From: Haplodiscus bocki
Lineage: Eukaryota
DNA: 64,000 nucleotides
NCBI GenBank assembly: GCA_965655095.1
Contig: OZ296653.1
Coordinates: 81,716,001 to 81,780,000, forward strand
Direction: 5' to 3'
Position numbers and translations under genes: made by a program. Positions 9,001-32,713 of the stretch are shown here, piece after piece. Position 1 is the first letter of the stretch. Each line of letters starts with the position of its first letter. The notes beneath the pieces were generated by a model. It made no database searches, was not told where the DNA came from, and saw only the letters and a list, made by a program, of their open reading frames with translations.

Positions 9001-12000
9001 ATCGTAAAAATGCTACAAAAGATGTCAACTCGGAATTGTACGCTCCAAAGGAACTTTTTAAAAAATGTTTCGAGAGAGCACCTGCCACAAAATTTCTGTC
9101 ACATCCGCCAAATTGCTATTGGATTTCGAGCGAAACTTTTTCGAAGGTGTTATCAAGACTGCTCTTTACATGTCTAGATGAGCATTATGAGAAAATCAAA
9201 AGTTTGAAAATTTTTACAAACTTTTTGTGATTTAACACAAAAGCTACCGTGTTTGAGCTAAATCTTCACGACAAGGATGTCAAATCTCCAATTGCTGTGT
9301 CCCGGGAAAACATTTGGGGAATAAAATTTCGAACATTTGTATTATTTTCGAACATCTGCGCAATAAAAGCTTTCGCACATTGAGCGACAGAGTTTCGACA
9401 AATTTGTGAAAGCAGCAATCTACCTGCCCAGAGAAAAATTTTGAGTGGCAAGTTTTTCCGTAAAAAGTTTCAAGTTCCCGAATTTTTGTGTCGGAGTTTC
9501 TGAGGAAAAGTACCGTCAATTGTGCGAGCAAACTTCTACAGGGTTATCGAAACTTCGTTCTATGAACCATGAAGAAAACTTTGAGTCGAAAGGTCGTTCC
9601 AAAGTTTTTAGAAAAATTTTGTCATCAGATGTCCACTAAAAAAATTTCGGGCTACGATGGAGGAACATTCGGCATTTCGGCAAGGTTGCTGAAAATGCCT
9701 TTTATATTCTCCAAGGAACATTTTATGAGAAAACGTTGATCGAGAACTTCTTTCATATTCGTTCTTTGATTCGATTTCTAGCAAACTGTTTCCGTATTTT
9801 GATGGCAAAATTTTTGGCATTGTTGGCAAAACATCTTTCAATGCATCCAGAGAAGCATTCTGGTTAAACAAACTCCAAGAGTTTTTTTGTTTTCTTTCCG
9901 GCTTTCGAGCAAAAATTCTGGAACTTGATCCATAAGTCTTCAGCAAAGTTGTCGAGTCTGATTTTTACGTGTCCAAAGGAACAACTTTGGAAAAAAATCC
10001 CAAAAAACAGACAGGACATCTTTTTGTGATGTTCACGGAAATGATATCAGTTTTTCGTAGAAGTTTTTTGGAAGTCATATCAAAAATTCTTATGTTGTGT
10101 TCAGGAAATGGGTGATTTTGAGAAACATTTTTCTTTTGAAAATTTTCCATTTCAAAACTCTTTAATTTCAGTCAGCGTGAAAAACTCGGACTCTGAAGCA
10201 AACAATTTCGAGTTTTATTTTAAAAAACTTTGAAAGCTGTCAAATCTAGAGTTTGCGTGTCAGAGAGAACAGTTTCGGAGATAGATTTTCGAGAACAGAT
10301 CAGAAATTATTCTCAGAACTTCACCATAATAAGATCGGTCCTTAGCACATTTTTTAGGCAGTATTATCAAAACTGTAATCTACGTGTGAAGAGAAACATT
10401 TTCGGTCTCGAGTCTTTGCCAAAAAAATCAAGTTTTTTTATTTCGGTTTTTCTTTTGAAAAACACCGTTCTTTGCGCAAACATGTTTTGGCAGGCTAATC
10501 AAAACTGCAATATATGTATTGTGAGCACCATTTTGGGTTGAAAAGTTGTTCAAATTTTTATTGAAGAATTTTTCTATTGAATGTCCAGCAAGACACTTCC
10601 GTACTTTGATTGGGAATGTTTTGGGAATTTCAGCAAAACATTAACCTAGACATCCGCAGGAACCTTTTCGTTGAACAACTCTTCCAAAAGAACGTGAATT
10701 TGCTGTGAGGTTTTGAGTTAAAAAATGAACCCAAGCAGTACAAACCTGTAACTTGATCGTAAAAATGCTACAAAAGATGTCAACTCGGAATTGTACGCTC
10801 CAAAGGAACTTTTTAAAAAATGTTTCGAGAGAGCACCTGCCACAAAATTTCTGTCACATCCGCCAAATTGCTATTGGATTTCGAGCGAAACTTTTTCGAA
10901 GGTGTTATCAAGACTGCTCTTTACATGTCTAGATGAGCATTATGAGAAAATCAAAAGTTTGAAAATTTTTACAAACTTTTTGTGATTTAACACAAAAGCT
11001 ACCGTGTTTGAGCTAAATCTTCACGACAAGGATGTCAAATCTCCAATTGCTGTGTCCCGGGAAAACATTTGGGGAATAAAATTTCGAACATTTGTATTAT
11101 TTTCGAACATCTGCGCAATAAAAGCTTTCGCACATTGAGCGACAGAGTTTCGACAAATTTGTGAAAGCAGCAATCTACCTGCCCAGAGAAAAATTTTGAG
11201 TGGCAAGTTTTTCCGTAAAAAGTTTCAAGTTCCCGAAGTTTTGTGTCGGACTTTCTGAGGAAAAGTACCGTCAATTGTGCGAGCAAACTTCTACAGGGTT
11301 ATCGAAACTTCGTTCTATGAACCACGAAGAACACTTTGAGTCGAAAGGTCGTTCCAAAGTTTTTAGAAAAATTTTGTCATCAGATGTCCACTAAAAAAAT
11401 TTCGGGCTACGATGGAGGAACATTCGGCATTTCGACAAGGTTGTTGAAAATGCCTTTTGTGTTCTCGAAGGAACATTTTATGAGAAAACGTTGATCGAGA
11501 ACTTCTTTCATATTCGTTCTTTGATTCGATTTCTAGCAAACTGTTTTCGTATTTTGATGGCAAAATTTTTGGCATTGTTGGCAAAACATCATTCAATGCA
11601 TCCAGAGAAGCATTCTGGTTAAACAAACTCCAAGAGTTTTTTTGTTTTCTTTCCGGCTTTCGAGCAAAAATTCTGGAACTTGATCCATAAGTCTTCAGCA
11701 AAGTTGTCGAGTCTGATTTTTACGTAACCAAAGGAACAATTTTGGAGAAAAATCCCCAATAACAGACAAGACATCTCTTTGTGATATTCACGGAAATGAT
11801 ATCAGTTTTTCGTAGAAGTTTTTTGGAAGTCATATCAAAAAATCTTATGTTGTGTTCAGGAAATGGGCGATTTTGAGAAACATTTTTCTTTTGAAAATTT
11901 TCCTTTTCAAAACTCTTTGATTTCAGTCAGCGTGAAAAACTCGGACTCTGAAGCAAACAATTTCGAGTTTTATTTTAAAAAACTTTGAAAGCTGTCAAAT

Positions 12001-15000
12001 CTAGAGTTTGCGTGTCAGAGAGAACAGTTTCGAAGATAGATTTTCGAGAACAGATCAGAAATTATTCTCAGAACTTCACCATAATAAGATCGGTCCTTAG
12101 CACATTTTTTTCGGCAGTGTTATCAAAACTGCAATCTACGTGTGAAGAGAAACATTTTCTGTCTCGAGTCTTTGCCAAAAAATCAAGTTTTTTTATTTCG
12201 GTTTTTCTTTTGAAAAACACCGTTCTTTGCGCAGTTATGTTTTGGCAGGGTTATCAAAACTGCAATATTTGTATCGTGATGACCATTTTGAGTTGAAAAG
12301 TTGTTCCAAATTTTTTTAAAGAATTCTTTGTCGAATGTCCAGCAAAAATCTTTCGTAGTTTGATTGGGAAAGTTTCGGCATTATTAGCGAAACATCATTC
12401 TATGCATCCAGAAGAACATTTCCGTTGAACAACTTATCGAAATGAACGTGAACTTCTTTCAGGCTTTGAGTAAAAAAATGGACCCAAGCGAAACATTTCT
12501 GTAACTTGATCGTAAAAACGGTGGGAAAGTTGTCAACTCGGCATTGTACGCTCCAAATGAAGATTTTTTAAAAAAACTTTCCAGAGAAAAGCTTCAACAA
12601 AATTTCTGTCATCTCCGCCGAATTGTTATTAGACTATGAGCGAATTTTTTTCGACAGTGTTATTAGGACAGTTCCTTACCTGTTCAGATGAACATTTTAG
12701 GAAAAACAAAAGTTTCAAAATTTTTACAATTTTTTTGTGATTTAGCACAAAAGCAACCGTGTTTGAGCTAAATCTTCACGACAAGGATGTCAAATCTGCA
12801 TTGTCTGTGTTCTGACAAAACGTTTGTGGAAAAACGTTTTGAAAATTTCTAATTTCTTAAGGCGTTTGGGCAAAAAATCATTCGCACATTGAGCATCGGG
12901 TTTTTGGCAAGTTTGTTAAAGCAGCAGTCTACGTGCCCAGAGAAATAATTTGAGTACTAAGTTTTATCTTACATTTTTTTCATGTTGTCGATGCTTTTTT
13001 TCGAAACTTCTGTGGAAATTTGTCGTTAATCGTGCGAACAAGTTTGGGCTAGGTTATCGAAACATCGTTTTATGCACAAAGATGAAAACTTTGAGCGGAA
13101 AGTTCGTTCCGAGATTTTTGAAAATTTTTTCATCAGATGTCCTGTAAGACTCTTTTGGACTTCGATCGAAGAACACTTGGCAATTCGGCAAGTTTGTCGG
13201 AAAATTATTCTGTGTTCCCAAAGGAATATTTTAAGGGGAAACTTCGATCGAAAACTTCTTTCATATTCGGTTCTTTGATTCGAATTCCAGCAAAATGTTT
13301 TCGTAGTTTGATTGCGAATTTTTCGGCAATACTATCAGAACATCATTTAATGCATCCGGAGAAGCATTGTGGTTGATCAACTTCGAGGAGCCTTTTTGTT
13401 TTGTTTCCGGTTTCAAGAAAAATTTTTATAAAATGGTCCAAAAATCTCCAGCAAAGTAGTCAACTCTGCTTTTTACGAGTCCAAAGAAACCATTCCAGAG
13501 AAGAGTCGTGGAAATTGGATAGGGCATGTTTTTGTGATCTTCACAGAAATGATATCAGATTTTGGTAGGAATTTCTTCAAAACTGCTTACGTCGTGTTCA
13601 GAGGTAGGGGTGATTTTGAGAAATGTTTATCTTCGAAAAGTTTTCCAAATTCGTAACTTTTTTGATTTTCGCTAGCGTGAAACTCTGTGCTGAGGAAAAC
13701 CATTTCGGGTTTTAATCTGAGAACACTTCAAAAGCTGTCAAGTCTAGATTTTACGTGTCTGAGGGAACAATTTTAGAAAATGAGTAGTCAAAAACAGATA
13801 TAGATTTTTTTCAGAACGTCAACAAAAGAATATCGGACTTTCAGCACAACTTCTTCCGCAGTGTTAACAAAACTGCATTCTACGTGTGCAGAGAAACATT
13901 TTCTGTTTCAAGTTTTTTTCCAAAAAGACTTTCAAGTTCATTTTTTTCGCTTTTTAGGCTGAAAAATTCCGTTCTTTGCGGCAACATGTTTTGGCAGGAT
14001 TAACAAAACTGCAGTATATAAATATTCTGAGAATCATTTGGGTTTGAAAAGTTGTCCAACATTTTTTTCAAGTTAACTTGTCGAATAACCAGCAAAACAC
14101 TTTCGTATTTTGTTTGGGAATATTTCGGCAAGGTTAGCAAAACATCATTCTATGCATCGAGAAGAACATTTTCGTTAAACAACTCTTCACAATGAACGTG
14201 AACTTGCTTTCAGGTTTCGAGTGAACAAACGGATCGAAGCGAAACAAATCTAACTTGATCGTAAAAACGGTAGCAACGTTGTCAACCTGGCCTCGTACGC
14301 TCCAAAGGAACAATTTAGGAAGAAAACTTTGCAGAGAATAGCCTGAACAAAACTTCTGTCATCTCCGCCAAAGTGTTACCGGACTTTGACCGAAACTTTT
14401 CGATAGTGTTATCAAAACTGCTCTCTACGTGTCCAGATGAACATTCTGGGAAAATCAAAAGTTTGAAAATTTTTACAAACCTTTTGTGATTTAGCACAAA
14501 AGCTACCGTGTTTGAGCTAAATCTTCACGACAAGGCTGGCAAATCTGCATTGTCTGTGTCCGGACAAAACGTTTGTAGAAAAACGTTTGTAGAAAAACGT
14601 TTCAAAAATTTCGATTTCTTTGGACGTTTGGGCAAAAAAAAACATTCACACATTGAGCGACACATTTTTGGCAAGTTTGTGCAACAGCAAACAGCAAATT
14701 ACGTGCTCAAACAAACTATTTGGGTGGCCAGATTTTCCGTAGGAAGTTTCAAGTTTTCAATTTTTTTGGAAAAAATTACCGCCAATTGTGCAAAAAACAT
14801 TGGGTAGGGTTATCCAAATATCGTTCTATGCACCAAGAAGAACACTTTGAGTGGAACGGTCGTCCAAATTTTTTGAAAAAACTTTTGTTAACCGATGTCC
14901 TAAAAAACACTTTTGGATTTCGATCGAAGAACATTCGGCAATTTGGCAAGGTTGTCGGAATTACATTCTGTGTTCCCGACGGAACAATTTACGGAAACAG

Positions 15001-16756
15001 ATGATCGAAAATTTCTTTGTTTTTGGCTTTTTGCTCCAATTTTCAGCAAACCGATTTTGTAGTTCGATTGGGGAAACTTCGGGAATGTTATCAAAACCTA
15101 ATTCAATCCATCCAATGAAGCATTCTGGTTCAACAACTTCCAGGAGTCTTTGTGTTTTGTTTCCGGATTTCGAGCATATCTTTGGGACTTGATCCAAAAT
15201 TTTTCAGCAAAAGTGTTCAGTCTGCTTTTTACGACGAGTCTAGAGGAACAGTTTCAGAGGAGAGTCCCCGAAATTAGATAGGACATGTTTTTGTGACCTT
15301 CGAAGAAATGATATCAGACTTTGGTCTAACTGTTTTTCGGAAGTGATGTCAAAACCGCGTACGTCGTGTTCCGGGGTAGGAGTGATTTTGAGAAGTGTTT
15401 TTCTCGAAAAAGTTTTCTACAATCGAAACTTGTTTGATTTTCTTCAGCTTAAAAAATTAGACTGAGGGAAATAATTTCGGGTTTTTACTTAAAAAATTTC
15501 AAAGGCCGTCAAATCTAGATTTTGCGTGTCAGAGAGAACAATTGTACAAGATAAGTCGTCGAAAACAGATTTAAACTTTCTCTCACAACTTCACCAAAAT
15601 AAGATCGGACCGTCAGCACAACTTTTTTACCAGTGGTAGCAAAATTGCTATCTACGTGTGCAGAGAAACACTTGTTTTCGACGTTTTTTCCAAGAAAACA
15701 TTCAAGCTCAATTTTTATTTCGCTTTTTATGCTGAAAAGTTCTGTACTTTGAGCTAATATGTTTTGGCAGGGTTATCAAGACTGCAGTATATGTATAGTG
15801 AGGACCCATTTGGTTTGAGAAGTCGTTCAATATTTTTTTAAAGACTTTTCTGTCGAATGTCCAACAAAACACTTTTGTTTTTTGATTGGGAATTTTTCCG
15901 TAATGTCATCAAAACATCATTTTCGTTAATCAACTCTTTACAATGAACGTGAACTTGCTTTCAGGTTTTGAGTAAAAAACGGACCCAAGTGAATCATTTT
16001 TCTGTAACTTGATCGTAAAAATGTTGGCAGAGTTGTAAACTCGTCATCGTACGCACCGAAGGAACAATTTAGGAAAAAAACTTTGCTGAGATTAGCCTGA
16101 ATAAAATTTCTGTCATCTGCGCCCAAGCGTTTTTGGACTTTGACCCAAACTTTTTGACAGTATTATGAAAAGTGCTCTTCACTTTACCAGATGAACATTA
16201 TGGGAAAAACAAAACTTTGAAACTTTCTACAAACTTTTTGTGATTTAGCACAAAAGCTACCGTGTTGGAGCTAAACCTTCACGACAAGGTTGTTAAATCT
16301 GCATTGTCTCTGTCCTGATTAAGCGTTTGTAGAAAAACGTTTCGAAAATTTGTAACTTGTTTGGGCGTTTGGGTAAAGTTTTTTCTTTAAGAACTTTTCA
16401 AGTTCCTAAACTTTTCTTTCGAAAATTCTGCCAGAAATTATCGCTAATCGTGCGAAAAAGTTTCGGCATGGTTATCGAAACATCGTTTTATGCACCGAGA
16501 ACGTTTTGTGCAGAAAACTCCTTCCTATTGTTTCAACGAATTTTTCATCAGATGCCCTGCAAAACATTTTCGGACTTTGATCAAAAAACACTGGGCAATT
16601 ACGCAAGGTTGTCAAAAAAGCATTCTGTGTTCCCAAAGGAACAATTTACGGTGAAACATTGATCGATAACTTCTTTCATATTCGTTTTTTTTATTCGATT
16701 TCCAGCAAAACCTTTTTTGTACTTTGAGAAAGAAAATTTCGGCAATGTTATCCAAT
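1..16756. repeat. Tandem satellite array, ~1.76-kb unit (about 9.5 units), each a 13-mer of ~135-bp monomers; starts before the window
   Basis: The marker TCTATCGAATGTCCAGCAA and its variants recur at 1, 1763, 3524, 5288, 7057, 8818, 10573, ~12327, ~14077 and ~15849, a spacing of 1750-1772 bp. Identical spurious ORFs recur at the same period in the ORF track. Confidence 0.97.
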
Positions 16757-19700
16757 AGTAGTATAGGCTGGGGGTGTCCCCGCACAGTTTCATGGTTTCC
16801 TATATGAAGTCATCAAACTCATACATGTTGTCTAAGAGTGCAAAGTACAAATTCAACCGAAACTGAATTTTGTTGAATAAGTACACAGTAAGTAAACCAA
16901 CTGTCAATATTCGTTGACATTGCAAATTTTCTACATAGATTTGACAGTTTTACAAAGGCTACCTCAAACATTTTTGATATCTGTTTGCGAGCTATCCGTT
17001 ATATGACAAAAGCTTTTACATTGACAGTAATGATACAAGTTTTGAGAAAAAAAAACATCTTTTTTTCAATAACCAAATTTTGTACGTTTCGTGTAATCTT
17101 AATATTTCAGTTACACTCTACGGATGGGAAACGTTTAAACTCGAGACCGAACACTAGCGTCAAGTTGGACATTATCAGTTCGCGAAAGGTAAAAAAAACG
17201 TTCAATTTCAGATTTGGGTTATGATTTACCTTCCATTTTTACATATGGGCGGGAAATTTAATAAAAGCCAGCGAGTCCAAAAACCGCGATGGGCAACACT
17301 TGAATGGTAATCTTAAACTGCCTAAAATCGAAAATTATCCTGAAAAACCGTGGTTTAGCAAACTCACATCAGAAGAGATAATTTTGGGTCTCCGAACACT
17401 GTTCAACATTTGATGCATAACGGTGGGCGATTCCAAAACCGTACTGCGAAACAATAAAATGGCAGTCTAACAATGTTTAAAACGCAAAAAATCTGAAAAT
17501 TCCGAACTGAAACCCAACCAAATCAACCGTTTCATGAAAAAGTGGGTGAGTCGAAAATCATATTGGAAAAACAATGAAACGTTAATGTCACAACGTTTTA
17601 AACCAAAAGTCTTAGAAAAAGCCGTTCTTCCATAAACTCACATCAAGATTTTGCTTTTACAATTCCGAACTCCATTAAAAGTTTGTGGGCGAGTCGAAAA
17701 ACTGAAAAACGATCAAAATCCGAGCTCAATTAAATTTGTATTTTTTTGACTTGGGAAACCCGAGATGCCATTGGTAGCAATTAAAAGCTAATGTTATAAA
17801 ACGGGAAAATAAATTTCTGTCTGAAAATGCCTTGGTTAGCAAAATCATGTCAAAAGGGTTGTGCTATACCTGCAACTAAACTTTCGATATACTAGTCTTG
17901 GGGAGCAAAAAAAGCTATCTTTTGTGAAAATTCAAGTCAACTCTCAATGCCGATGAGCAAAATGGTTGTTTGAAACTGCAATCTTCGATCCAATCCATAT
18001 CAAGAAACGCAGTTTCACACAGTTAAAAATCTCAACTACACAATTTATTCACTAGATTTAAAGAGCCGAAAACTAGATTGAAAAACTACTAAGTGTTGGT
18101 ATCACATTACATAAAATCAAAGCACTTTCTAAAAAAACGTTCTCTTCCAAACTCCCTGACAAATTGTGGCTTCAGTTTCCTAAATTGTACTACACTATTG
18201 GATAGCCTTGTGCAAACCCAAATGCGATTTGGAAGCAGTTAAACATTCCTACTTTATTACGGTAAACACAAAGTTTGTCTGAAAATGCCGTGGTCTTGAT
18301 AATTCATCTCAAAAGGGTCATTCTATACCTTCGGCTCCAAGTAAACATGCAAACACAAGGTGTACAAGTATCGCTAACACCAAAACCATAATGGAAAACA
18401 ATTGACCGTTAGCATGATATTACAAAAAAATAAAACTCCCTCAAAAGCGCTATGCTTTGGCAAAATCCTAAGCGAGAAGGTGTTTGTTTTTAGTCGTCTG
18501 AACTAAAGTAAACTATCGATGTATAGCCTTTCAAAGGCCCAAAATTAAATTGAAAGCAATGAAACAAGAAAGTTGACTCCTGAATTGCAAAAAACACAAG
18601 TCTGTCTGAAAATGCTTTTCTCCTGCAAATTTACATCGAAAAGGTTGTTCTGGAGCTCTGATCATTGGTAAACAATTGACTTACAAGTCTGAATGAAGTC
18701 ACAAATGATCCTGGGAAACAACTCAGCACAATTCCAACAACTCCGAAAACTATAGTCCTGAAAATCATGCATTTTTGCAAGCTCACATCAACAATGCAAT
18801 TGAAGTTAAAGCAAACGTCTGTTGTACAATTCGGGGTAAACTAAAAACTATTTTTTGAAACACTGATGTTACTTCCACGCTACTTTAAACTTCAACTCTT
18901 TTGCAAAATGCCGCACCGCACGCATTGAAACAGAAATGTTTATAGTCCTGCTAGCGCAACTAGTGACTTCAGGTAAAGTCATGGGCAAGTCCAAAAACCG
19001 CATTGGCAAAACAATTAGACAAAAGTTAGGCATTAACTCAGAGCTATAGACTCTGAAAAAACTTCAATTTTATAAAATTGACATCATATTTTCGAATTCA
19101 AACATCCAAACACAACTGCGATAAGTTACTGCCTTCTCATTCGAGCCCGAAAAGCACAGTGACAGGAGTCCATAGTTAGTTTCAGTTAGCTGGAAGCAAG
19201 GTTTTCTGAGAAAGTCACGCTGTTGCCAACTCACATCAAAAATGTGTTTCAAGTTTCCTCACTGAGATAACGTTTACTGTACAAATGTTGAACAGTCCAA
19301 CGACCAGTTGGAAAACAGTGAAAGGTTCACTGCAAACTACCCAATCGTTCAAGAACTACCCCTGATCAATGAAATGACAACAAGAACGGTGGTTGTAGAC
19401 ATCTGTTATCTACTGAACCTTTGATGTACAAAACAGTGCGAGCGGGGAGAGAAAAATTCAAACAGCAAAAATAATGTCCAACTCAGCCAAGTCCGAAATC
19501 TGTTCTGGCAAAAATTTACAATCACCGCACGGTAGAATTTAGAAAGTGATGTTTGCATCTGAAAACAGAGTGAAAATTCCATCCAAATCTGTTACAACTT
19601 TTTTTAAAAAGCTTGAGTTTTTCGGCAATATCTCATTGTAATCATAACAGCGTAATCACAGCAAAGTCTAATAAAATTGTGAAGAGGTCTAGTAAACGTT

Positions 19701-21485
19701 ATTCAATCAGATTCCTAATAAAAAAGCAAATTTTGAACAAAATTCTTTCCTGACAGCAATGTTTTCCAGCAGTCATGAACAACGAAAGTCGAAACATTGG
19801 TTCTAGGAAAATTTCGCATTGCATTCCCAACACAATTCGAGTATAGAAAGTAAGCGCGTGAAAAAATTACTGACTACTGCTGCCGCAGCAGCAAGTTGTT
19901 GTTTATTTTGATGAGTGGAGTAATGGTTGACGCTGAAATGTATGATACTAATAACAAACGTTCCTTGATATGATTGAATTCAAGAAAGAACGCTGTTTGA
20001 ACTTCTGAAAATTCGCCTACTTTGTTTCAAAATTTATATGAAACGAACCAAAAATTTGATTGATTTAACGGATCCATAAATGTCAGTTCAAAACTTCCAA
20101 CTTTTGATGCGTTCAAACAAAACTTTCACTGAATATTTTCCAGCAGTTAAGACAACCAATGACCAAACAGTGATTTTCTGTAAAATTAACTTTTGCATCC
20201 CAAACACTATTCGAGTGTGAAAATTACGTGCGTGAAAAAAAGTATTGAATACTGTTGCCACTGAGGCAAGCAGCTGTTTTGTTTTGATCAATTGAATATC
20301 TGATGAAGCTCATGGTTTTAATGGTATTAACAACGTTCACTTGATCTGAGTGAATACAGGAAAAGCCCTGATTGTATTTCTAAACTTTTGCCCACACTGT
20401 TTCAAGTTTCACATCAAACTAATCAATTATTCAATTTGATTATAGGATCAACAAATGCCTTTTCAAAACTTGCAGCTGTTGATGTGTTGAATGAAACAAA
20501 TTACTGAGAATGCTTCGCAAAAGTTCTCGTCAGCAAATCAATTTTCAATTTGTTTTTCGGCCTCTTTTTGAATTCAACTCTAATCGTCTAGATCCAAACT
20601 CATCAAACTAGAGATCAGACCTGAAGATCTTGGTGCTGAATAGCGATTTGGGGAATGAAAGTTAAAAAAAGCCTTGACTTCGAGAAACCATGAATCAAGA
20701 ACCGTAACAATGCCCGCCCCATTTTAAACGCTGCTTTTTGATATTAGGGTTTAAATGTCTGTCTGGAGGCTTCAGTCAGCAGAATTTCAAGCCTCACTCG
20801 GAACATTGGACACTCTAGATTTTCCCGTTCGTTTTCTGCTTTCCAATATCAAGAGAAGAGAGCCATCTTGATTCTGTTCAGTGGTTAAATCCGCAGTGCC
20901 ATCTAAACTGGAAAATTCTCAAAAATATCTTCAAAAAGTAGTGTACTTCAGAGGGTACCGGAGGGCGATGCAAACTTTGGGCCATGCAGCGAGTGGATCC
21001 CATAACTCTTAGTTTGCGAAGCTCTTTGCCAACCTCTCAACTAGAGTACCTCGAAGAAAAGAATTCACAGTCATCCACAAGGAAACATCGACTCTAGCTT
21101 AATTCTGCTTTGCCAACTTGTTTGTGGTAGATGTGTTCCGTACAATATTAGCATTCGGTGTGACGCCGCCGGCGAATTTCTTTGTTTTGTTCCGAATCAT
21201 TTTTTCGGGCAACTTTTATTACCTCTCTACATCGCGCATCAAAGATTGATCCTTTTGAAAATAAACCAAATTTCAGTTTGAATTTCGTGGGTAAGAAAAC
21301 CAGAATTGTTAGAGATTTTCAGTTCAGCCGCTGGTTCTCTATTTCAGTAACTTTCGATTCACGCCTGAAAAGTTTACAACTAGGCAGAAACAAAATGAGC
21401 AGGTACTTCTTCACCGAGCCAAAGGTCAAATCTCAGGCCAAAAGTGATCTTCTCATGCCGGCTATCTAATAGGCTCTACCGAGAT
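16757..21485 (+). repeat. Left inverted arm (~4.73 kb)
   Basis: Reverse complement of 23644-28375. The inner end GCCGGCTATCTAATAGGCTCTACCGAGAT pairs with ATCTCAGTAGAGCCTTTTGGATAGCCGGC. Confidence 0.95.
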
Positions 21486-22763
21486 CCAATTGAAACCACA
21501 AGCTTTTGGACAAAATTCGACTATGTGCACAATTTAACGATTTCAGGAAAGGACACAAGCTTCTTAGAAATCAAAAACAACTACGGTAGAACAAGCAATC
21601 GCTGTTTCCAACTTTGGTTTATTGTCAAACTTTTCCCACAGAAAAGAAACCGTAAGTTTGAGAACAAATGGCATTGAAATGCAAATACTTTTAAGGAGCC
21701 TCGATCATTTGGACTGAACTGCACTTCTTGTAGGCTCAAGCACTTGTGCCTGACTATCGACTATCTACTTAGTTTGAGGCAACAAATTGATCTCGGACTG
21801 AAAGCAAGAAACAGTGTTTCAATCTCAGTAGAGCCTTTTGGATAGCCGGCATGAGAAGATCTCTTTTGGCCTGAGATTTGACCTTTGGCTCGGTGAAGAA
21901 ATATCTGCTCATATTGTTTCTGCCTGGTTGTAAAACTTTCAGGCATGAACCGAAAGTTACTGAAAAAGAGAACCAGCGGCTGCAGTGAAAAACTCTAACA
22001 ATTCAGGTTTTTTTACCCACTAAGTTCAAACTGAAATTTGGTTTACTTTCAGAAGGATCAATCTTTGATGCGCGATGTACAGAGGTATTAGAAGTTGCCC
22101 GAAAAAGTAATTCGAAACAAAACAAAAAAATTCACCGGCTGCGTCACAGCGAATGCTAATATTGTATGCAACACATCTACCACAAACAAGTTGCAAAGCA
22201 GAATTAAGCTAGAGTCGATGTTTCCTTGTGGATGACTGTGCATTCTTTTCTTCAAGGTACTATAGTTTAGTTGAGAGGTTGGCAAAGAGCTTCGCAAACT
22301 AAGAGTAATGGGATCCACTCGCTGCATTGCCCAAAGTTTGCATCGCCCTCTTTTACCCTCTGAAGTACTCTACTTTTTGAAGAAATTTTTGAGATTTTTC
22401 CAGTTTAGATAGCACTGCGGATTTAACCACTGAACAGAATCAAGATGGCTCTCTTCTCTTGATATTGGAAAGCAGAAAACGAACGGGAAAATCCAGAGTG
22501 TCCAATGTTCCGAGTGAGGCTTGAAATTCTGCTGACTGAAGCCTCCAGACAGACATTTAAACCCTAATATCAAAAAGCAGCGTTTAAAATGGGGCGGGCA
22601 TTGTTACGGTTCTTGATTCATGGTTTCTCGAAGTCAAGGCTCTTTTTAACTTTCATTCCCAAATCGCTATTCAGCACCAAGATCTTCAGGTCTGCTCTCT
22701 AGTTTGATGAGTTTTGGATCTAGACGATTAGAGTTGAATTCAAAAAGAGGCCGAAAAGCAAAT

Positions 22764-22963
22764 NNNNNNNNNNNNNNNNNNNNNNNNNNNNNNNNNNNNN
22801 NNNNNNNNNNNNNNNNNNNNNNNNNNNNNNNNNNNNNNNNNNNNNNNNNNNNNNNNNNNNNNNNNNNNNNNNNNNNNNNNNNNNNNNNNNNNNNNNNNNN
22901 NNNNNNNNNNNNNNNNNNNNNNNNNNNNNNNNNNNNNNNNNNNNNNNNNNNNNNNNNNNNNNN
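22764..22963. other. Assembly gap (200 N) flanked by a near-identical direct duplication, 21140-22763 vs 22964-24586
   Basis: Run of N. The two flanking copies differ mainly by single-base indels, e.g. AAGTTGCAAAG/AAGTTGGCAAAG and TTCGTGGGTAAG/TTCGTGGTAAG. Confidence 0.95.
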
Positions 22964-23643
22964 GTACAATATTAGCATTCGGTGTGACGCCGCCGGCGAA
23001 TTTCTTTGTTTTGTTCCGAATCATTTTTTCGGGCAACTTTTATTACCTCTCTACATCGCGCATCAAAGATGATCCTTTTGAAAATAAACCAAATTTCAGT
23101 TTGAATTTCGTGGTAAGAAAACCAGAATTGTTAGAGATTTTCAGTTCAGCCGCTGGTTCTCTATTTCAGTAACTTTCGATTCACGCCTGAAAAGTTTACA
23201 ACTAGGCAGAAACAAAATGAGCAGGTACTTCTTCACCGAGCCAAAGGTCAAATCTCAGGCCAAAAGTGATCTTCTCATGCCGGCTATCTAATAGGCTCTA
23301 CCGAGATCCAATTGAAACCACAAGCTTTTGGACAAAATTCGACTATGTGCACAATTTAACGATTTCAGGAAAGGACACAAGCTTCTTAGAAATCAAAAAC
23401 AACTACGGTAGAACAAGCAATCGCTGTTTCCAACTTTGGTTTATTGTCAAACTTTTCCCACAGAAAAGAAACCGTAAGTTTGAGAACAAATGGCATTGAA
23501 ATGCAAATACTTTTAAGGAGCCTCGATCATTTGGACTGAACTGCACTTCTTGTAGGCTCAAGCACTTGTGCCTGACTATCGACTATCTACTTAGTTTGAG
23601 GCAACAAATTGATCTCGGACTGAAAGCAAGAAACAGTGTTTCA

Positions 23644-26600
23644 ATCTCAGTAGAGCCTTTTGGATAGCCGGCATGAGAAGATCTCTTTTGGCCTGAGATT
23701 TGACCTTTGGCTCGGTGAAGAAATATCTGCTCATATTGTTTCTGCCTGGTTGTAAAACTTTCAGGCATGAACCGAAAGTTACTGAAAAAGAGAACCAGCG
23801 GCTGCAGTGAAAAACTCTAACAATTCAGGTTTTTTTACCCACTAAGTTCAAACTGAAATTTGGTTTACTTTCAGAAGGATCAATCTTTGATGCGCGATGT
23901 ACAGAGGTATTAGAAGTTGCCCGAAAAAGTAATTCGAAACAAAACAAAAAAATTCACCGGCTGCGTCACAGCGAATGCTAATATTGTATGCAACACATCT
24001 ACCACAAACAAGTTGGCAAAGCAGAATTAAGCTAGAGTCGATGTTTCCTTGTGGATGACTGTGCATTCTTTTCTTCAAGGTACTATAGTTTAGTTGAGAG
24101 GTTGGCAAAGAGCTTCGCAAACTAAGAGTAATGGGATCCACTCGCTGCATTGCCCAAAGTTTGCATCGCCCTCTTTTACCCTCTGAAGTACTCTACTTTT
24201 TGAAGAAATTTTTGAGATTTTTCCAGTTTAGATAGCACTGCGGATTTAACCACTGAACAGAATCAAGATGGCTCTCTTCTCTTGATATTGGAAAGCAGAA
24301 AACGAACGGGAAAATCCAGAGTGTCCAATGTTCCGAGTGAGGCTTGAAATTCTGCTGACTGAAGCCTCCAGACAGACATTTAAACCCTAATATCAAAAAG
24401 CAGCGTTTAAAATGGGGCGGGCATTGTTACGGTTCTTGATTCATGGTTTCTCGAAGTCAAGGCTCTTTTTAACTTTCATTCCCCAAATCGCTATTCAGCA
24501 CCAAGATCTTCAGGTCTGCTCTCTAGTTTGATGAGTTTGGATCTAGACGATTAGAGTTGAATTCAAAAAGAGGCCGAAAAGCAAATTGAAAATTGACTTG
24601 CTGACGAGAACTTTTGCGAAGCATTTTCAGTAATTTGTTTCATTCAACACATCAACAGCTGCAAGTTTTGAAAAGGCATTTGTTGATCCTATAATCAAAT
24701 TGAATAATTGATTAGTTTGATGTGAAACTTGAAACAGTGTGGGCAAAAGTTTAGAAATACAATCAGGGCTTTTCCTGTATTCACTCAGATCAAGTGAACG
24801 TTGTTAATACCATTAAAACCATGAGCTTCATCAGATATTCCATTGATCAAAACAAAACAGCTGCTTGCCTCAGTGGCAACAGTATTCAATACTTTTTTTC
24901 ACGCACGTAATTTTCACACTCGAATAGTGTTTGGGATGCAAAAGCTAATTTTACAGAAAATCACTGTTTGGTCATTGGTTGTCTTAACTGCTGGAAAATA
25001 TTCAGTGAAAGTTTTGTTTGAGCGCATCAAAAGTTGGAAGTTTTGAACTGACATTTATGGATCCGTTAAATCAATCAAATTTTTGGTTCGTTTCATCAAA
25101 ATTTTGAAACAAAGTAGGCGAATTTTCAGAAGTTCAAACAGCGTTCTTTCTTGAATTCAATCATATCAAGGAACGTTTGTTATTAGTATCATACATTTCA
25201 GCGTCAACCATTACTCCACTCATCAAAATAAACAACAACTTGCTGCTGCGACAGCAATAATCAATAAGATTTTCACGCGCTGATTTGCTATACTCGAATA
25301 GTGTTGGGAATGCAATGCGAAATTTTCATAAAACCAATGTTTGGACTTTCGTTGTTCATGACTGCCGGAAAACATTGCTGTCAGGAACGAATTTTGTTCA
25401 AAATTGGCTTATTTCATTTGGAACCTGATTGAATAACGTTTACTAGACATCTTCACACTTCTATTGTACTTTGCTGTGAATACACTATTATGAATACAAT
25501 GAGATTTTTCAGAAAAACTCAAAGATTTTTAAAAAGTTGTAATAGATTTGGATGGAATTTTCACTCTGTTTTCAGATGCAAACATCACTTTCTAAATTCT
25601 ACCGTGCGGTGATTGTAAATTTTTGCCAGAACAGATTTCGGACTTGGCTGAGTTGGACATTATTTTTGCTGTTTGAATTTTTCTCTCCCCGCTCGCACTG
25701 TTTTGTACATCAAAGGTTCAGTAGATAACAGATGTCTACAACCACCGTTCTTGTTGTCATTTCATTGATCAGGGGTAGTTCTTGAACGATTGGGTAGTTT
25801 GCAGTGAACCTTTCACTGTTTTCCAACTGGTCGTTGGACTGTTCAACATTTGTACAGTAAACGTTATCTCAGTGAGGAAACTTGAAACACATTTTTGATG
25901 TGAGTTGGCAACAGCGTGACTTTCTCAGAAAACCTTGCTTCCAGCTAACTGAAACTAACTATGGACTCCTGTCACTGTGCTTTTCGGGCTCGAATGAGAA
26001 GGCAGTAACTTATCGCAGTTGTGTTTGGATGTTTGAATTCGAAAATATGATGTCAATTTTATAAAATTGAAGTTTTTTCAGAGTCTATAGCTCTGAGTTA
26101 ATGCCTAACTTTTGTCTAATTGTTTTGCCAATGCGGTTTTTGGACTTGCCCATGACTTTACCTGAAGTCACTAGTTGCGCTAGCAGGACTATAAACATTT
26201 CTGTTTCAATGCGTGCGGTGCGGCATTTTGCAAAAGAGTTGAAGTTTAAAGTAGCGTGGAAGTAACATCAGTGTTTCAAAAAATAGTTTTTAGTTTACCC
26301 CGAATTGTACAACAGACGTTTGCTTTAACTTCAATTGCATTGTTGATGTGAGCTTGCAAAAATGCATGATTTTCAGGACTATAGTTTTCGGAGTTGTTGG
26401 AATTGTGCTGAGTTGTTTCCCAGGATCATTTGTGACTTCATTCAGACTTGTAAGTCAATTGTTTACCAATGATCAGAGCTCCAGAACAACCTTTTCGATG
26501 TAAATTTGCAGGAGAAAAGCATTTTCAGACAGACTTGTGTTTTTTGCAATTCAGGAGTCAACTTTCTTGTTTCATTGCTTTCAATTTAATTTTGGGCCTT

Positions 26601-28375
26601 TGAAAGGCTATACATCGATAGTTTACTTTAGTTCAGACGACTAAAAACAAACACCTTCTCGCTTAGGATTTTGCCAAAGCATAGCGCTTTTGAGGGAGTT
26701 TTATTTTTTTGTAATATCATGCTAACGGTCAATTGTTTTCCATTATGGTTTTGGTGTTAGCGATACTTGTACACCTTGTGTTTGCATGTTTACTTGGAGC
26801 CGAAGGTATAGAATGACCCTTTTGAGATGAATTATCAAGACCACGGCATTTTCAGACAAACTTTGTGTTTACCGTAATAAAGTAGGAATGTTTAACTGCT
26901 TCCAAATCGCATTTGGGTTTGCACAAGGCTATCCAATAGTGTAGTACAATTTAGGAAACTGAAGCCACAATTTGTCAGGGAGTTTGGAAGAGAACGTTTT
27001 TTTAGAAAGTGCTTTGATTTTATGTAATGTGATACCAACACTTAGTAGTTTTTCAATCTAGTTTTCGGCTCTTTAAATCTAGTGAATAAATTGTGTAGTT
27101 GAGATTTTTAACTGTGTGAAACTGCGTTTCTTGATATGGATTGGATCGAAGATTGCAGTTTCAAACAACCATTTTGCTCATCGGCATTGAGAGTTGACTT
27201 GAATTTTCACAAAAGATAGCTTTTTTTGCTCCCCAAGACTAGTATATCGAAAGTTTAGTTGCAGGTATAGCACAACCCTTTTGACATGATTTTGCTAACC
27301 AAGGCATTTTCAGACAGAAATTTATTTTCCCGTTTTATAACATTAGCTTTTAATTGCTACCAATGGCATCTCGGGTTTCCCAAGTCAAAAAAATACAAAT
27401 TTAATTGAGCTCGGATTTTGATCGTTTTTCAGTTTTTCGACTCGCCCACAAACTTTTAATGGAGTTCGGAATTGTAAAAGCAAAATCTTGATGTGAGTTT
27501 ATGGAAGAACGGCTTTTTCTAAGACTTTTGGTTTAAAACGTTGTGACATTAACGTTTCATTGTTTTTCCAATATGATTTTCGACTCACCCACTTTTTCAT
27601 GAAACGGTTGATTTGGTTGGGTTTCAGTTCGGAATTTTCAGATTTTTTGCGTTTTAAACATTGTTAGACTGCCATTTTATTGTTTCGCAGTACGGTTTTG
27701 GAATCGCCCACCGTTATGCATCAAATGTTGAACAGTGTTCGGAGACCCAAAATTATCTCTTCTGATGTGAGTTTGCTAAACCACGGTTTTTCAGGATAAT
27801 TTTCGATTTTAGGCAGTTTAAGATTACCATTCAAGTGTTGCCCATCGCGGTTTTTGGACTCGCTGGCTTTTATTAAATTTCCCGCCCATATGTAAAAATG
27901 GAAGGTAAATCATAACCCAAATCTGAAATTGAACGTTTTTTTTACCTTTCGCGAACTGATAATGTCCAACTTGACGCTAGTGTTCGGTCTCGAGTTTAAA
28001 CGTTTCCCATCCGTAGAGTGTAACTGAAATATTAAGATTACACGAAACGTACAAAATTTGGTTTTTGAAAAAAAGATGTTTTTTTTTCTCAAAACTTGTA
28101 TCATTACTGTCAATGTAAAAGCTTTTGTCATATAACGGATAGCTCGCAAACAGATATCAAAAATGTTTGAGGTAGCCTTGGTAGAACTGTCAAATCTACG
28201 TAGAAAGTTTGCAATGTCAACGAATATTGACAGTTGGTTTACTTACTGTGTACTTAGTCAACAAAATTCAGTTTCGGTTGATTTTGTACTTTGCACTCTT
28301 AGAAAACATGTATGAATTTGATGACTTCATATAGGGAGCCATGAAACTGTGCGGGGCCCCCCAGCATATACTACT
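23644..28375 (-). repeat. Right inverted arm (~4.73 kb)
   Basis: Reverse complement of 16757-21485. Confidence 0.95.
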
Positions 28376-28381
28376 TCCAAT

Positions 28382-29820
28382 CATCTTTCAATGCATTCGG
28401 GAAAGCAATCTGTTAAAATAACTTTCTAGAGTCTATTTGGTCTGTTTCCGGATTTCAAGCAAAGTTTTTAGAAATTGGTCCGAAAACACTCAGCAAAGTA
28501 GTCAAGTCTGCTTTCTACGAGTCAAGAGGAACAATTTCAGAGAAGAGTCCCTGAAATTAGATCGGACATGTTTTGGTGATCTTCACAGAAATGATAAGAA
28601 ATTTTCATAGAAAATCTTTCCGTAGTGATATCAAAACTGCTTACGTCGTGTTCAGGGGTAGGGGTGACTTTCAGAAATGTTTTTCATAGAACAGTTTTCC
28701 AAATTCGGAACTTGTGTGACTTTCTTCAGCGGAAAAAACTGGACTGAGGAAAACATTTTCGTGTTTTAATTTAAAAAACTTTAAAAGCTGTCAAACCTAG
28801 AATTTACGTGTCTGAGAGAACATTTTTAGAAGATGAGTTTTCAAAAACACATATAAATTTTTTCTCAGAATTTCAACAAAAAATATCGGACTTTCAGCAC
28901 AACTTTCTCCGCAGTGTTAACAAAACTGCAATCTACATGTGCAGCAAAACTCTGCGTGTTTCAAGTTTTTTTCCAAAAAATTTTTCAAGTTCATTTTTAA
29001 TTTCGCTTTTAATGCTGAGAAGTTCCGGACTTTGCGCTAATATGTTTTGGCAGGGTTATCAAAACTGCAGTATATGTATCGTGAGAACCATTTTAGTTTG
29101 AAAAGTTGTTCAATTTTTTTCTAAAAATCCTTTTGTCGAATGTCTAGCAAGACACTTCCGTACTTTGATTGAGAATGTTTCGGGAAGTTTAGCAAAACAT
29201 CAATCCCGGCTTCCAGGGGAACATTTTCGTTAATCAACTCTTCACAATGAACGTGAACTTGCTTTCAGGTTTTGAGTGAACAAACGGAGCGAAGCGAAAC
29301 AAATTTGCAACTTGATCGTAAAAACGGTAGCAACGTTGTCAACTAGGCCTCGTACGCTCCAAAGGAACAAATTAGGAAGAAAACTTTGCAGAGAATAGTC
29401 TGAACAAAACTTTTGTCATCTCCGCCAAAGTGTTATTGGACTTTGACCGAAACTTTTCGACAGTGTTATCAAAACTGGTCTCTACGTATCCAGATGAACT
29501 TCATGCGAAAATCAAAAGTTTGAAAACTTTTACAAACTTTTTGTGATTTAGCACAAAAGCTACCGTGTTTGAGCTAAATCTTCGCGACAAGGATGTCAAA
29601 TCTGCATTGTCTGTCTCCTGACAAAACGTTTGTAGAAAAACGTTTGTAGAAAAACGTTTCAAAAATTTCGATTTCTTTGGACGTTTGGGCAAAAAAAAAC
29701 ATTCACACATTGAGCGACACATTTTTGGCAAGTTTGTTCAAGCAGCAAAGTACGTGATCAAACAGACTATTTGGGTGGCCAGAATTTCCGTAGAATGTTC
29801 CAAGTTTCAGAAGTTTTTTT
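28382..29820. repeat. Continuation of the 1.76-kb satellite after the insertion; array end
   Basis: Resumes in register after the TSD. Unit marker at ~29132. Same monomer motifs, e.g. GCTACCGTGTTTGAGCTAAATC. Confidence 0.95.
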
Positions 29821-30817: not shown

Positions 30818-32713
30818 GTGCACTCTGCATTGGGCCAGGTACAACGTCAAGCAGAGGCATTGTCCAAACTTATTCGTTGGATCGAACAAGGAAATGTGCC
30901 GACATCACAAAAATTGCAAGGACTTCATAGGCTCGCCTGGCAATTCAAGAACCAACTCCCCGATGGAATTTTGTGCCGAAAATTTGAAACTGGCGACAAT
31001 GAAGTAGTATTACAACAAATAGTGCCGCCATCAATGACGCACGAAATTTTATCAGCGTGTCATTCATCACCATCAGTCGGACATTTAGGAGTTGCTAAAA
31101 CCTCAGAGAAAATAAAAGAAAGATTCTACTGGCCAGGACTGCAGGCAGACACAAAACCGTTTGTCAGTCAGTGCCCGGAATGTCAAAAACGTTCGGGACC
31201 GCCCAAGAAATATCATCATTCACTAATAGAATGGCAAGCTAGTTATCCATTTCATCACATTGGAATCGATTTCTCGGGACCTTTACCAATGTCAAACGGA
31301 AACAAACACATCCTAGTAATTGGCGATCACTTCACAAAATGGTACGAGGCAATACCATTACCAGATGAAACGGCCGTCTTAACTGCGAATGCCTTAGTTG
31401 ATCATTGGATCAGCCGATTTGGTTGCCCACACAGGCTGCACAGCGATCAAGGCCGAAACTTCGAATCAAAACTTTTTGAACAATTAATTCAACTTCTTGA
31501 AATGGACAAAACCAGAACAACACCTTTTCACCCTCAGTCAAATTCGGTGATCAAAAGATTGAATAAAATTTTACAAAATATGTTAGCAAAATGTGTATAT
31601 GAAGAGCAAAGCAATTGGTCACAGCAATTGCCGTACGTTATGATGGCCTATCGATCTTCGGTACACGAATCAACAGGATATGCATCTCAATCCCTAGTTT
31701 TTGGACAAGGATTGAGTATGCCTTTAGATTGCATGTATCCTAACCCGCAAGAAACAGAAAGTACTGATATCTATAAATTCGTGCACAGTAAATAGCGAAC
31801 ATTTCAACAAGTTTTTGAGCTAGTTCGACACAACTTGAACGAAAAACAAAAACGCCGAAATTTTATCTACAGTAAAAAGGTTCACGGCCCAACATACAAA
31901 GAAGGACAGAAAGTTTTGCTTGATCATCCAGCCACCAGAATTGGAACAACTTCTAAATCCGCAAGCCCTTGGAAGGGACCGTATATCGCTGAAAAATGTT
32001 TAAACGATGTAACGTTCAGAATCCAGGAAGAAAAATCCTCAAAACAACAAATTGTACTTTACGACAGTCTGAAATTTTTCTTTGAATCTCCGACTAAGTC
32101 CAATGTACCTACAAGAAACAAACCAAGAAAATTTCAGTCAATTCAAGAAATAGCAGATACACAAAAACACATAGATGGAACACTTAATCAAGATGATTGT
32201 CCTAGCTTCTTGCCAACACCTTCTAGTGCTTTCACACCAATACCTGCCGTAGGATGAACAACCGCATCAATCCCAACAAGTATATTTACACCAATTACTT
32301 CGTCTGCACCAATTACTTCGTCTGCCCCAAAACGAGAGGTAACGAGATCACCTCCTGTATTCTCGCTATCACCCGTAATGGAACAACTTAGTCCACACAC
32401 AGGAAATAACGTTGCAATACAACCACCGATTATCCCTGAAATCGACATACAACCTCTCATCCCGGACACAGCCTTTATCGACGAAAGACAATCACCACGC
32501 GACAAACTCACGGAAATCGTGGACGCAGCAGCTAGAAATCTTAGAACAACTCCTGCAAACACGTCCACAATGCAGTTACGAACCAATACGTCAGCACAAA
32601 GAAAAGCACAACCACTTTTCACGTCATATCTCCCAGACATAAAAACGGGTTATAACTCTCCAGATAAAAAAACCCGAAAACAGTGTCAGATGGAAAACTT
32701 AAAAAAACCTTAA
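30818..32713 (+). pseudogene. pol: pol: integrase (HHCC zinc finger, DDE core, GPY/F) plus a Pro/Ser/Thr-rich tail
   Basis: ACHSSPSVGHLG...FYWPG...CPEC; IGIDFSGP; LHSDQGRNF; TTPFHPQSNSVIKRLN (catalytic Glu replaced by Lys); WKGPYI. In-frame stops at ~31793 and ~32255. Confidence 0.95.

Follow-up and report, generated by a model that had tools for sequence, protein, structure and literature searches.

The 64,000-nucleotide window analyzed here (Haplodiscus bocki, assembly GCA_965655095.1, contig OZ296653.1, positions 81,716,001 to 81,780,000 of the forward strand) carries a long, gene-less palindromic element at positions 16757-28375, inserted into a tandem array of host repeats. The initial annotation, made from the sequence alone, had placed a giant non-coding palindrome with Polinton/Maverick ends at 16751-28381, a range that includes the target-site duplication (TSD) as well as the element proper. 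The element begins with a non-coding left arm of 4,729 bp (16757-21485, plus strand), which starts with AGTAGT, and finishes with a right arm of 4,732 bp (23644-28375, minus strand), which ends in ACTACT. The two arms form an inverted repeat with 97.6% identity, differing by 102 substitutions (48 transitions, 54 transversions) and 6 small indels, in agreement with the arms of about 4.73 kb described previously. The termini read AGTAGTATA at the 5' start and TATACTACT at the 3' finish, and the end motif is AGTAGT...ACTACT, i.e. (AGT)2/(ACT)2; the Polinton-like ends claimed for the element can be read directly in the sequence.

The hexamer TCCAAT is present immediately outside both termini, at 16751-16756 and 28376-28381, and the right copy matches the left exactly. 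At ends already fixed by an inverted repeat, such a 6/6 match has a chance probability of about 1 in 4096. Analysis of the flanks revealed a tandem array of ~1.76-kb units, 71-79% alike, that occupies 1-16750 and resumes from 28382 to ~29700. The element interrupts one of these units, with the left part of the neighboring host sequence at 14500-16750 and the right part at 28382 to ~29700. In nine other units the match to the left flank runs directly into the match to the right flank via one hexamer, while the filled unit has two. These nine units therefore serve as paralogous empty sites, and they establish both the element's ends and the 6-bp duplication without recourse to the inverted repeat. 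The exact 6-bp TSD that had been reported is thus secure.

Between the arms lies a 336-bp spacer (21486-21821) made up of two segments on the plus strand, segment A (~104 bp, 21486-21589) and segment B (232 bp, 21590-21821), the latter contiguous with the right arm. The same spacer is repeated, 100% identical and in the same orientation, at 23308-23643, on the far side of an assembly gap of exactly 200 N (22764-22963). The left contig ends with the inner 942 bp of the right arm (21822-22763, minus strand; the same sequence as 23644-24586), and the right contig starts with the last 346 bp of the left arm followed by A and B (22964-23643, plus strand; 99.7% identical to 21140-21821). Comparison of the contig ends showed that 21140-22763 recurs at 22964-24586 (1,624 versus 1,623 bp) with 0 substitutions and 5 single-base indels. 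Because the arms are only ~91-94% alike over this stretch, the two versions represent one sequence read twice across the gap. The 200-N gap is a scaffolding artefact between contig ends that overlap by 1.62 kb, and both contigs independently read arm-spacer-arm across the centre. When the overlap was counted once, the element measured 9,795 bp, 96.6% of it inverted repeat, consistent with the earlier estimate of about 9.8 kb after removal of the gap artefact; this length was computed from the overlap. As the element is non-coding, the gap disrupts no reading frame. A 'flip-flop' of spacer orientation between the two window copies was considered and rejected, since the copies are identical, share the same orientation and constitute the assembly overlap. 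The central 736 nt fold at -230 kcal/mol (z = -32).

Identity between the arms is patchy. It amounts to 94.8% in the outermost 250 bp, 91-94% at 19507-20007 and ~91% in the inner 500 bp, and the longest exact inverted stretch is a 2,520-bp tract (17071-19590) identical to its mirror at 25544-28063. At the divergence of the remaining arm, ~115 differences would be expected in this tract; none was observed. Arm-to-arm gene conversion is the likely source of the identical tract, which may alternatively reflect over-polishing in assembly. Each arm also contains two tandem ~374-bp sub-repeats that are 71% alike (19758-20491, plus strand; mirrored at 24643-25376) and that are present in the arms of the relatives described below. 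Tandem Repeats Finder detected nothing inside the element, and no further arm copies were found elsewhere in the window.

No gene was recognized in the element. The longest stop-to-stop piece in arm plus spacer encodes 110 amino acids (aa), and a Pfam scan of the 72 pieces of at least 38 aa from this sequence gave a best E value of 0.0066, the chance level for 72 queries. An Rfam search of 16000-29000 gave no match, and none of ten arm open reading frames (ORFs) was present in an exact look-up of the protein collection. A word search with a centre piece straddling the arm/spacer border (21164-21466) returned no relatives, and homologues of the polymerase and integrase gene pieces carried by relatives of the element were absent from the window. 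A putative conserved mini-hairpin formed at the termini by a G-run and a C-run was rejected, being no more stable than shuffled sequence in 11 of 12 ends. The earlier statement that the element has no recognizable gene is upheld by the Pfam and Rfam results, and an element without a gene can only be a non-autonomous member of the Polinton/Maverick group.

To place the element among related sequences, we used a 110-aa translated arm piece (16892-17221), which matched ten predicted proteins at 66-74% identity. Nine of the ten were traced to loci, designated L001-L009, all in ENA assembly ERZ26859043. Two of the proteins start with a translation of the terminus itself, and the copies do not agree in reading frame, which indicates that the matched proteins are spurious ORFs on related DNA copies. 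All 13 ends in the nine loci and the window start with (AGT)2 or longer; the locus ends carry (AGT)2 or (AGT)3, next to which lie purine-rich sequence and a G-run. The outermost ~70 bp occur in at least two unrelated versions plus a third variant, on otherwise homologous arms. The first version, type 1, comprises the outermost ~73 bp of the window element (16757-16829, plus strand; mirrored at 28303-28375) and is common to L001, L002 and L003. Type 2 is present in a second element in L003 (L003b) and in L004, L005, L007 and L009, and the further variant in L006 and L008. Common to all termini are only the first 7 bases (AGTAGTA) and the following G-run of 5-13 G. Inside the point that corresponds to window 16830, all loci are homologous at 72-90% identity, and the window arms are about 82-88% identical to the arms of other copies.

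Locus L001 contains a second complete palindromic copy (7502-17883), 10.4 kb long, free of N and bounded by unrelated flanks. Its two arms agree at 96.6% of positions across 3.8 kb, and it holds segments A and B with ~1.25 kb of additional sequence, segment C, between them. The left flank ends in ATCGCC, and the identical hexamer is found on the right flank after four extra bases (the bases and the hexamer together spanning 17884-17893); the extra bases could be filler or a small slippage at the ACTACT junction. Of the features for which other copies were to be checked, L001 has the palindromic form; its 6-bp repeat is present but displaced by 4 nt, and its segments A and B are separated by segment C. 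The best-conserved arm-to-arm part is the same in both complete copies (17007-19507 and the matching L001 segment, at 100% and 98.6%), and the 500 bp that follow are the worst-conserved part in both (~92-93%). Approximately 107 sites differ between the window arms; at these sites the outgroup copies agree with one arm in ~63 cases and with the opposite arm in ~35, which identifies the differences as private mutations on both arms. The arms group by copy and not by side: those of the window are 97.6% identical to each other and only 84-88% identical to any other copy, and side-specific (left versus right) arm lineages common to several copies were not found.

The relatives also retain a part of the element that the window copy lacks. 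Inward from the terminus, L002, L003, L007 and L008 read arm, then B, then C (~1.25 kb); B directly adjoins the arm in these four loci and in L001, and C, which lies between B and A, is absent from the window copy. L008 continues through A and turns back on itself at ~16470, and its contig stops 230 nt later. In L001 the stretch 11330-11606 is self-complementary around a 32-nt loop. Self-alignment scores were 368 for L001 and 346 for L008, compared with at most 43 in shuffled sequences. Since L008 diverges most of all copies (72% identity in the inner arm) and bears another version of the terminus, a symmetry centre common to L001 and L008 predates the split of the subfamilies. From this, the ancestral element would have been a near-perfect palindrome of about 2 x 6.4-6.8 kb, some 13 kb in total. 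L001 has retained the centre and is without the inner ~2.6 kb of its left half. In the window copy the left half consists of the arm only and the right half of arm, B and A, with C and the centre missing. Segment A has a 92% match at L001 11577-11687, ~109 nt to one side of the L001 symmetry centre; since A starts ~109 nt from the axis, the window copy is without the centre itself. The window copy probably lost the centre and a further 1.25 kb through two deletions, and both junctions coincide with 3-4 nt overlaps of the alignment ends. Two such deletions would make the 336-bp spacer a remnant of the formerly paired right half. The initial annotation of a unique spacer of ~335 bp was correct in size, but this spacer is not an original hairpin loop.

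Chromosomal palindromes with long, similar arms and a short spacer are unstable (PMC7999016), and survival of centre-deleted copies is therefore expected. The contigs of L002, L007 and L008 end near the expected start of the second half, and the window assembly broke at the same place, which suggests that palindromic copies are systematically hard to assemble and that copy numbers taken from assemblies are too low. Four contigs (L002, L006, L007 and L008) stop inside or just beyond an arm. L003 may be a single half, though its similarity breaks off.

Three of the loci (L003, L004 and L009) include parts of gene-bearing Polinton-like elements. L007 holds the full arm and segment B, and its contig stops before any second half; L009 shares the terminus and 3 kb of arm with L007 at 84.7% identity. 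Beyond the arm, L009 has a same-strand run of ORF pieces, one of which matches DNA_pol_B_2, the family of protein-primed polymerases (E 1.3e-4). The polymerase reading frame is interrupted at least five times, by at least one frameshift and otherwise by in-frame stops, a count derived from the bounds of the listed ORF pieces. A word search with the L009 polymerase piece, limited to a set length range, revealed 2,925 relatives, almost every one of them from an ENA assembly; the best 120 of these are 70-89% identical, and 27 carry PF03175. The piece adjoining the polymerase piece belongs to a 124-member cluster at 90% identity. These counts indicate that the L009-type Polinton family appears to be hugely amplified in at least one host. 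A PDB sequence search with two pieces from the polymerase region returned nothing useful. The junction between arm and interior is present twice in L009 at 96%, which makes the adjacency of arm and polymerase-bearing interior a property of a repeated element. The 2.5-kb direct duplication that spans this junction (5625-8170 and 11336-13854, 96%) may represent a pair of copies, either nested or in tandem. In L004, a type-2 end is combined with arm homology of ~0.6 kb and an rve integrase core (E 1.4e-6) that matches the profile only partially, being truncated or broken at least once, and that lacks an H2C2 finger; its junction between terminus and interior was found again in L003. Arm homology in the gene-bearing relatives breaks off at 0.1, 0.6 and 3 kb, and nothing in the ~10 kb of interior sequence analyzed from L004 and L009 corresponds to the innermost 1.7 kb of the arm or to segments A, B and C. 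As to autonomous partners, look-ups aimed at copies of the non-coding arm yielded arm-sharing loci with polymerase (L009) and integrase (L004) genes; capsid and ATPase genes were not recognized in these partial loci.

These features agree with published descriptions of Polintons. Vertebrate Mavericks have 5'-(AGT)2//(ACT)2-3' or (AG)3//(CT)3 ends, a perfect 6-bp TSD and terminal inverted repeats (TIRs) that measure 46-1,447 bp (PMC8097293), the Polinton TSD is 6 bp (PMC10045372), and short tandem repeats at the termini are interpreted as a sign of protein-primed replication (PMC4196379). The window element has the 6-bp TSD, AG...CT ends with short tandem repeats and terminal inverted repeats, the last of these, at 4.73 kb, well outside the published ranges, and is itself gene-less. 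With the structural features of the group and none of its genes, it is a non-autonomous member. It resembles autonomous Polinton/Maverick elements (polintoviruses) in its (AGT)2...(ACT)2 ends, 6-bp TSD and inverted repeats, and differs from them in having no gene and in measuring 9.8 kb, compared with their 13-25 kb. Non-autonomous Polintons in Repbase, treated by Kapitonov and Jurka in 2006, are reportedly gene-poor; their classification uses the termini and the 6-bp TSD, and they presumably rely on autonomous partners. The inverted repeat accounts for 97% of the window element, whereas the TIRs of vertebrate Mavericks have the lengths given above and those of butterfly polintons are ~2 kb (preprint 10.1101/2025.02.07.637071). 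We consider it probable that the element derives from a Polinton/Maverick, is non-autonomous, and transposed whole in its palindromic form. The published end and TSD signature, together with the arm-sharing relatives that carry polymerase or integrase genes, bears out the earlier Polinton/Maverick assignment, and the single TSD pair and the second complete palindromic copy in L001 do the same for the claim that the element integrated when already palindromic.

Several observations weigh against this assignment. A clean 6-bp TSD is present in only one of the two complete copies, the repeat in L001 being displaced by 4 bases, and all relatives come from one other assembly, ERZ26859043. Every gene-bearing relative seen has type-2 ends and none has the type-1 outermost 70 bp of the window element; between the window ends and these type-2 ends only bases 1-7 match. 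Under the Repbase rule a non-autonomous Polinton has the same TSD length as a classified member and at most 1 mismatch to it in bases 1-11 (PMC4455052). The DNA_pol_B_2 and rve matches in the fetched loci fall below the Pfam gathering score, although their relatives reach threshold. Capsid, packaging ATPase and maturation protease were not recognized by Pfam in the ~10 kb interior of L004 and L009, which are partial loci. Among the loci there is no non-palindromic parent colinear with one half, and gene-bearing relatives share the outer 0.1-3 kb only; a fold-back origin is to that extent incompletely separated from deletion within a parent with very long TIRs.

The palindromic form itself is consistent with a fold-back (snap-back) origin. 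The founder would have been a near-perfect palindrome that formed when a terminal segment of a linear replicon was copied back on itself. A polymerase may have left its template for the nascent or displaced strand, or a molecule closed by a hairpin at its end may have been replicated. Such a product would have two identical origin-bearing ends that could be recognized by the terminal protein, polymerase and integrase of a helper, and it would depend on the helper-encoded polymerase and integrase. As a single strand it would fold into one long duplex. The window copy was inserted into the host tandem repeat as one unit, with the 6-bp duplication typical of the Polinton retroviral-type integrase. 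The window copy would later have lost the centre and 1.25 kb more, leaving a 336-bp asymmetric spacer that should stabilize the palindrome in the chromosome, and its arms would afterwards have been partly re-homogenized, probably by gene conversion. The symmetry axis with its 32-nt loop is what fold-back leaves, and a deletion between terminal repeats would not leave an axis. The family comprises two or more complete insertions of independent origin, its termini exist in three versions and its copies diverge by 10-28%, yet the centre is shared, which indicates that the palindromic form itself propagated. Arm-to-arm identity far exceeds identity between copies, which fits arms that were identical at insertion, and its patchiness fits later gene conversion. 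The fold-back origin is inferred from sequence architecture and is favoured by the near-perfect symmetry centre of the relatives; snap-back replication would be a further supposition.

Comparable products are known from protein-primed replicons. Incomplete adenovirus genomes can carry inverted duplications of one end, and yeast linear killer plasmids have hairpin or palindromic derivatives. Like these fold-back defective genomes, the element family has one terminal segment inverted and duplicated round a tiny loop, with two identical origin-bearing ends and a presumed reliance on a helper. Halves that meet at a very short loop were found in L001 (32 nt) and L008, whereas in the window the centre has been lost. 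Fold-back defective genomes are extrachromosomal by-products; the element family, in contrast, is integrated, transposed and diversified, with at least three terminus versions and 72-90% identity between copies, and is known from integrated copies only. Whether the element is a true Polinton satellite, that is, a gene-less hairpin replicon with a helper-recognized origin at the tip of the duplex, is a more demanding proposition, which we regard as possible, if on balance doubtful.

The alternative that fares best is internal deletion, in which a gene-bearing Polinton with TIRs of 4.7-6.7 kb would have lost all genes between its repeats with no fold-back involved. Non-autonomous DNA transposons usually arise as deletion derivatives, and the gene-bearing L009 does have 3 kb of non-coding arm homology ahead of its first gene. 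Long TIRs of the kind required have a partial precedent in insect polintons, where TIRs of ~2 kb exist (preprint 10.1101/2025.02.07.637071). In L001 and L008, however, inverted symmetry reaches to ~16 nt from a single axis, the interior sequence analyzed from L004 and L009 (~10 kb) lacks the innermost 1.7 kb of the arm as well as segments A, B and C, and arm homology in gene-bearing relatives ends at varying points (0.1, 0.6 and 3 kb). We therefore regard internal deletion as unlikely.

A palindrome made by the host, through an ordinary insertion followed by inverted duplication via a replication template switch or a hairpin-capped break, is far less probable still. Inverted duplications are well known in eukaryotic chromosomes (PMC7999016), and the window copy, without a symmetry centre and with an asymmetric spacer, resembles centre-deleted long chromosomal palindromes. 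Those are products of host rearrangement, whereas the palindrome here is a mobile element: one exact TSD pair encloses all of it, a single array unit is split between its flanks, the same architecture and centre are found at other loci, and the arms end on the inner side without element termini.

Assignment to another superfamily (IS3EU/GingerRoot, Ginger2, a pair of long terminal repeat (LTR) elements or a Foldback/Galileo-like element) is just as improbable. Several groups produce 6-bp TSDs (PMC10045372), but IS3EU/GingerRoot ends are TA..TA or TG..CA and Ginger2 has TGTNR ends and an RTATAY target, compared with AGTAGT..ACTACT in TCCAAT for the element, which argues against the earlier concern that the termini might be those of a non-Polinton group. 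Foldback-like elements have very long, internally repetitive TIRs, and Galileo belongs to the P superfamily (PMC3573991). The window element is like Drosophila Foldback/Galileo in its very long inverted repeats, internal sub-repeats and little or no coding sequence, and unlike them in superfamily, transposase, ends and TSD length, with only two ~374-bp sub-repeats per arm. P and FB elements make TSDs of 7-9 bp, which also counts against this assignment. A Ty3/Gypsy-type integrase (Integrase_H2C2, rve and Integrase_p58_C; split over two or more ORF pieces and so interrupted at least once) lies 2.4 kb downstream of the element at 30818-32257 on the plus strand. Polinton integrases are without an H2C2 finger (PMC10045372), whereas this gene has the retroelement H2C2 finger and sits outside the TSD; it was rejected as a partner of the element. 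The relatives, moreover, carry a protein-primed polymerase.

An assembly artefact, caused for instance by long reads that are fold-back chimeras or by contigs wrongly joined at the gap, is the least probable explanation of all: the gap lies at the centre, a 2.5-kb tract is perfectly identical and the contig-end copies differ only by homopolymer-type indels, but the arms differ by 102 substitutions, host sequence and TSD are present on both flanks, both contig ends independently read arm-A-B-arm, and the same architecture occurs without N in a different assembly.

The remaining features of the window belong to the surrounding DNA. The array comprises at least nine units of ~1.76 kb, each with a 14-bp microsatellite, and the units contain minus-strand ORFs of 112-133 aa with no Pfam match. 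The Ty3/Gypsy-type integrase lies within a plus-strand run of ORFs at 30.2-35.8 kb, an LTR-retroelement remnant just past the array. A 142-bp unit is repeated three times in tandem at 50501-50934 (86% matches).

Taken as a Polinton/Maverick derivative, the element is a gene-less, almost wholly inverted-repeat offshoot of the group, and its palindromic form is without a description that we could find: our literature search turned up no Polinton family with a near-perfect palindromic body and a conserved symmetry centre. Both assemblies examined broke or were mis-scaffolded at these elements, which are therefore likely to be under-counted. Polinton/Maverick replication has, to our knowledge, been proposed from sequence and never observed; the proposal involves a single-stranded, folded intermediate copied by the protein-primed polymerase. 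A transposed and diversified family built of two inverted copies of a terminal segment would be a natural record of a fold-back product that was recognized, integrated and amplified by the Polinton machinery. It would also narrow the sequence sufficient in cis, given that the (AGT)n ends are present in all copies and the next 70 bp are interchangeable, and it offers a concrete target for existing long-read and small-RNA data. If the element is a true satellite, it would be copied and integrated by the polymerase and integrase of a helper, much like a defective-interfering genome, and its persistence would have been sufficient for subfamilies with exchanged terminal segments to diverge. Any transcripts of such a satellite would be perfect long hairpins, a possible source of small RNAs directed against the helper.

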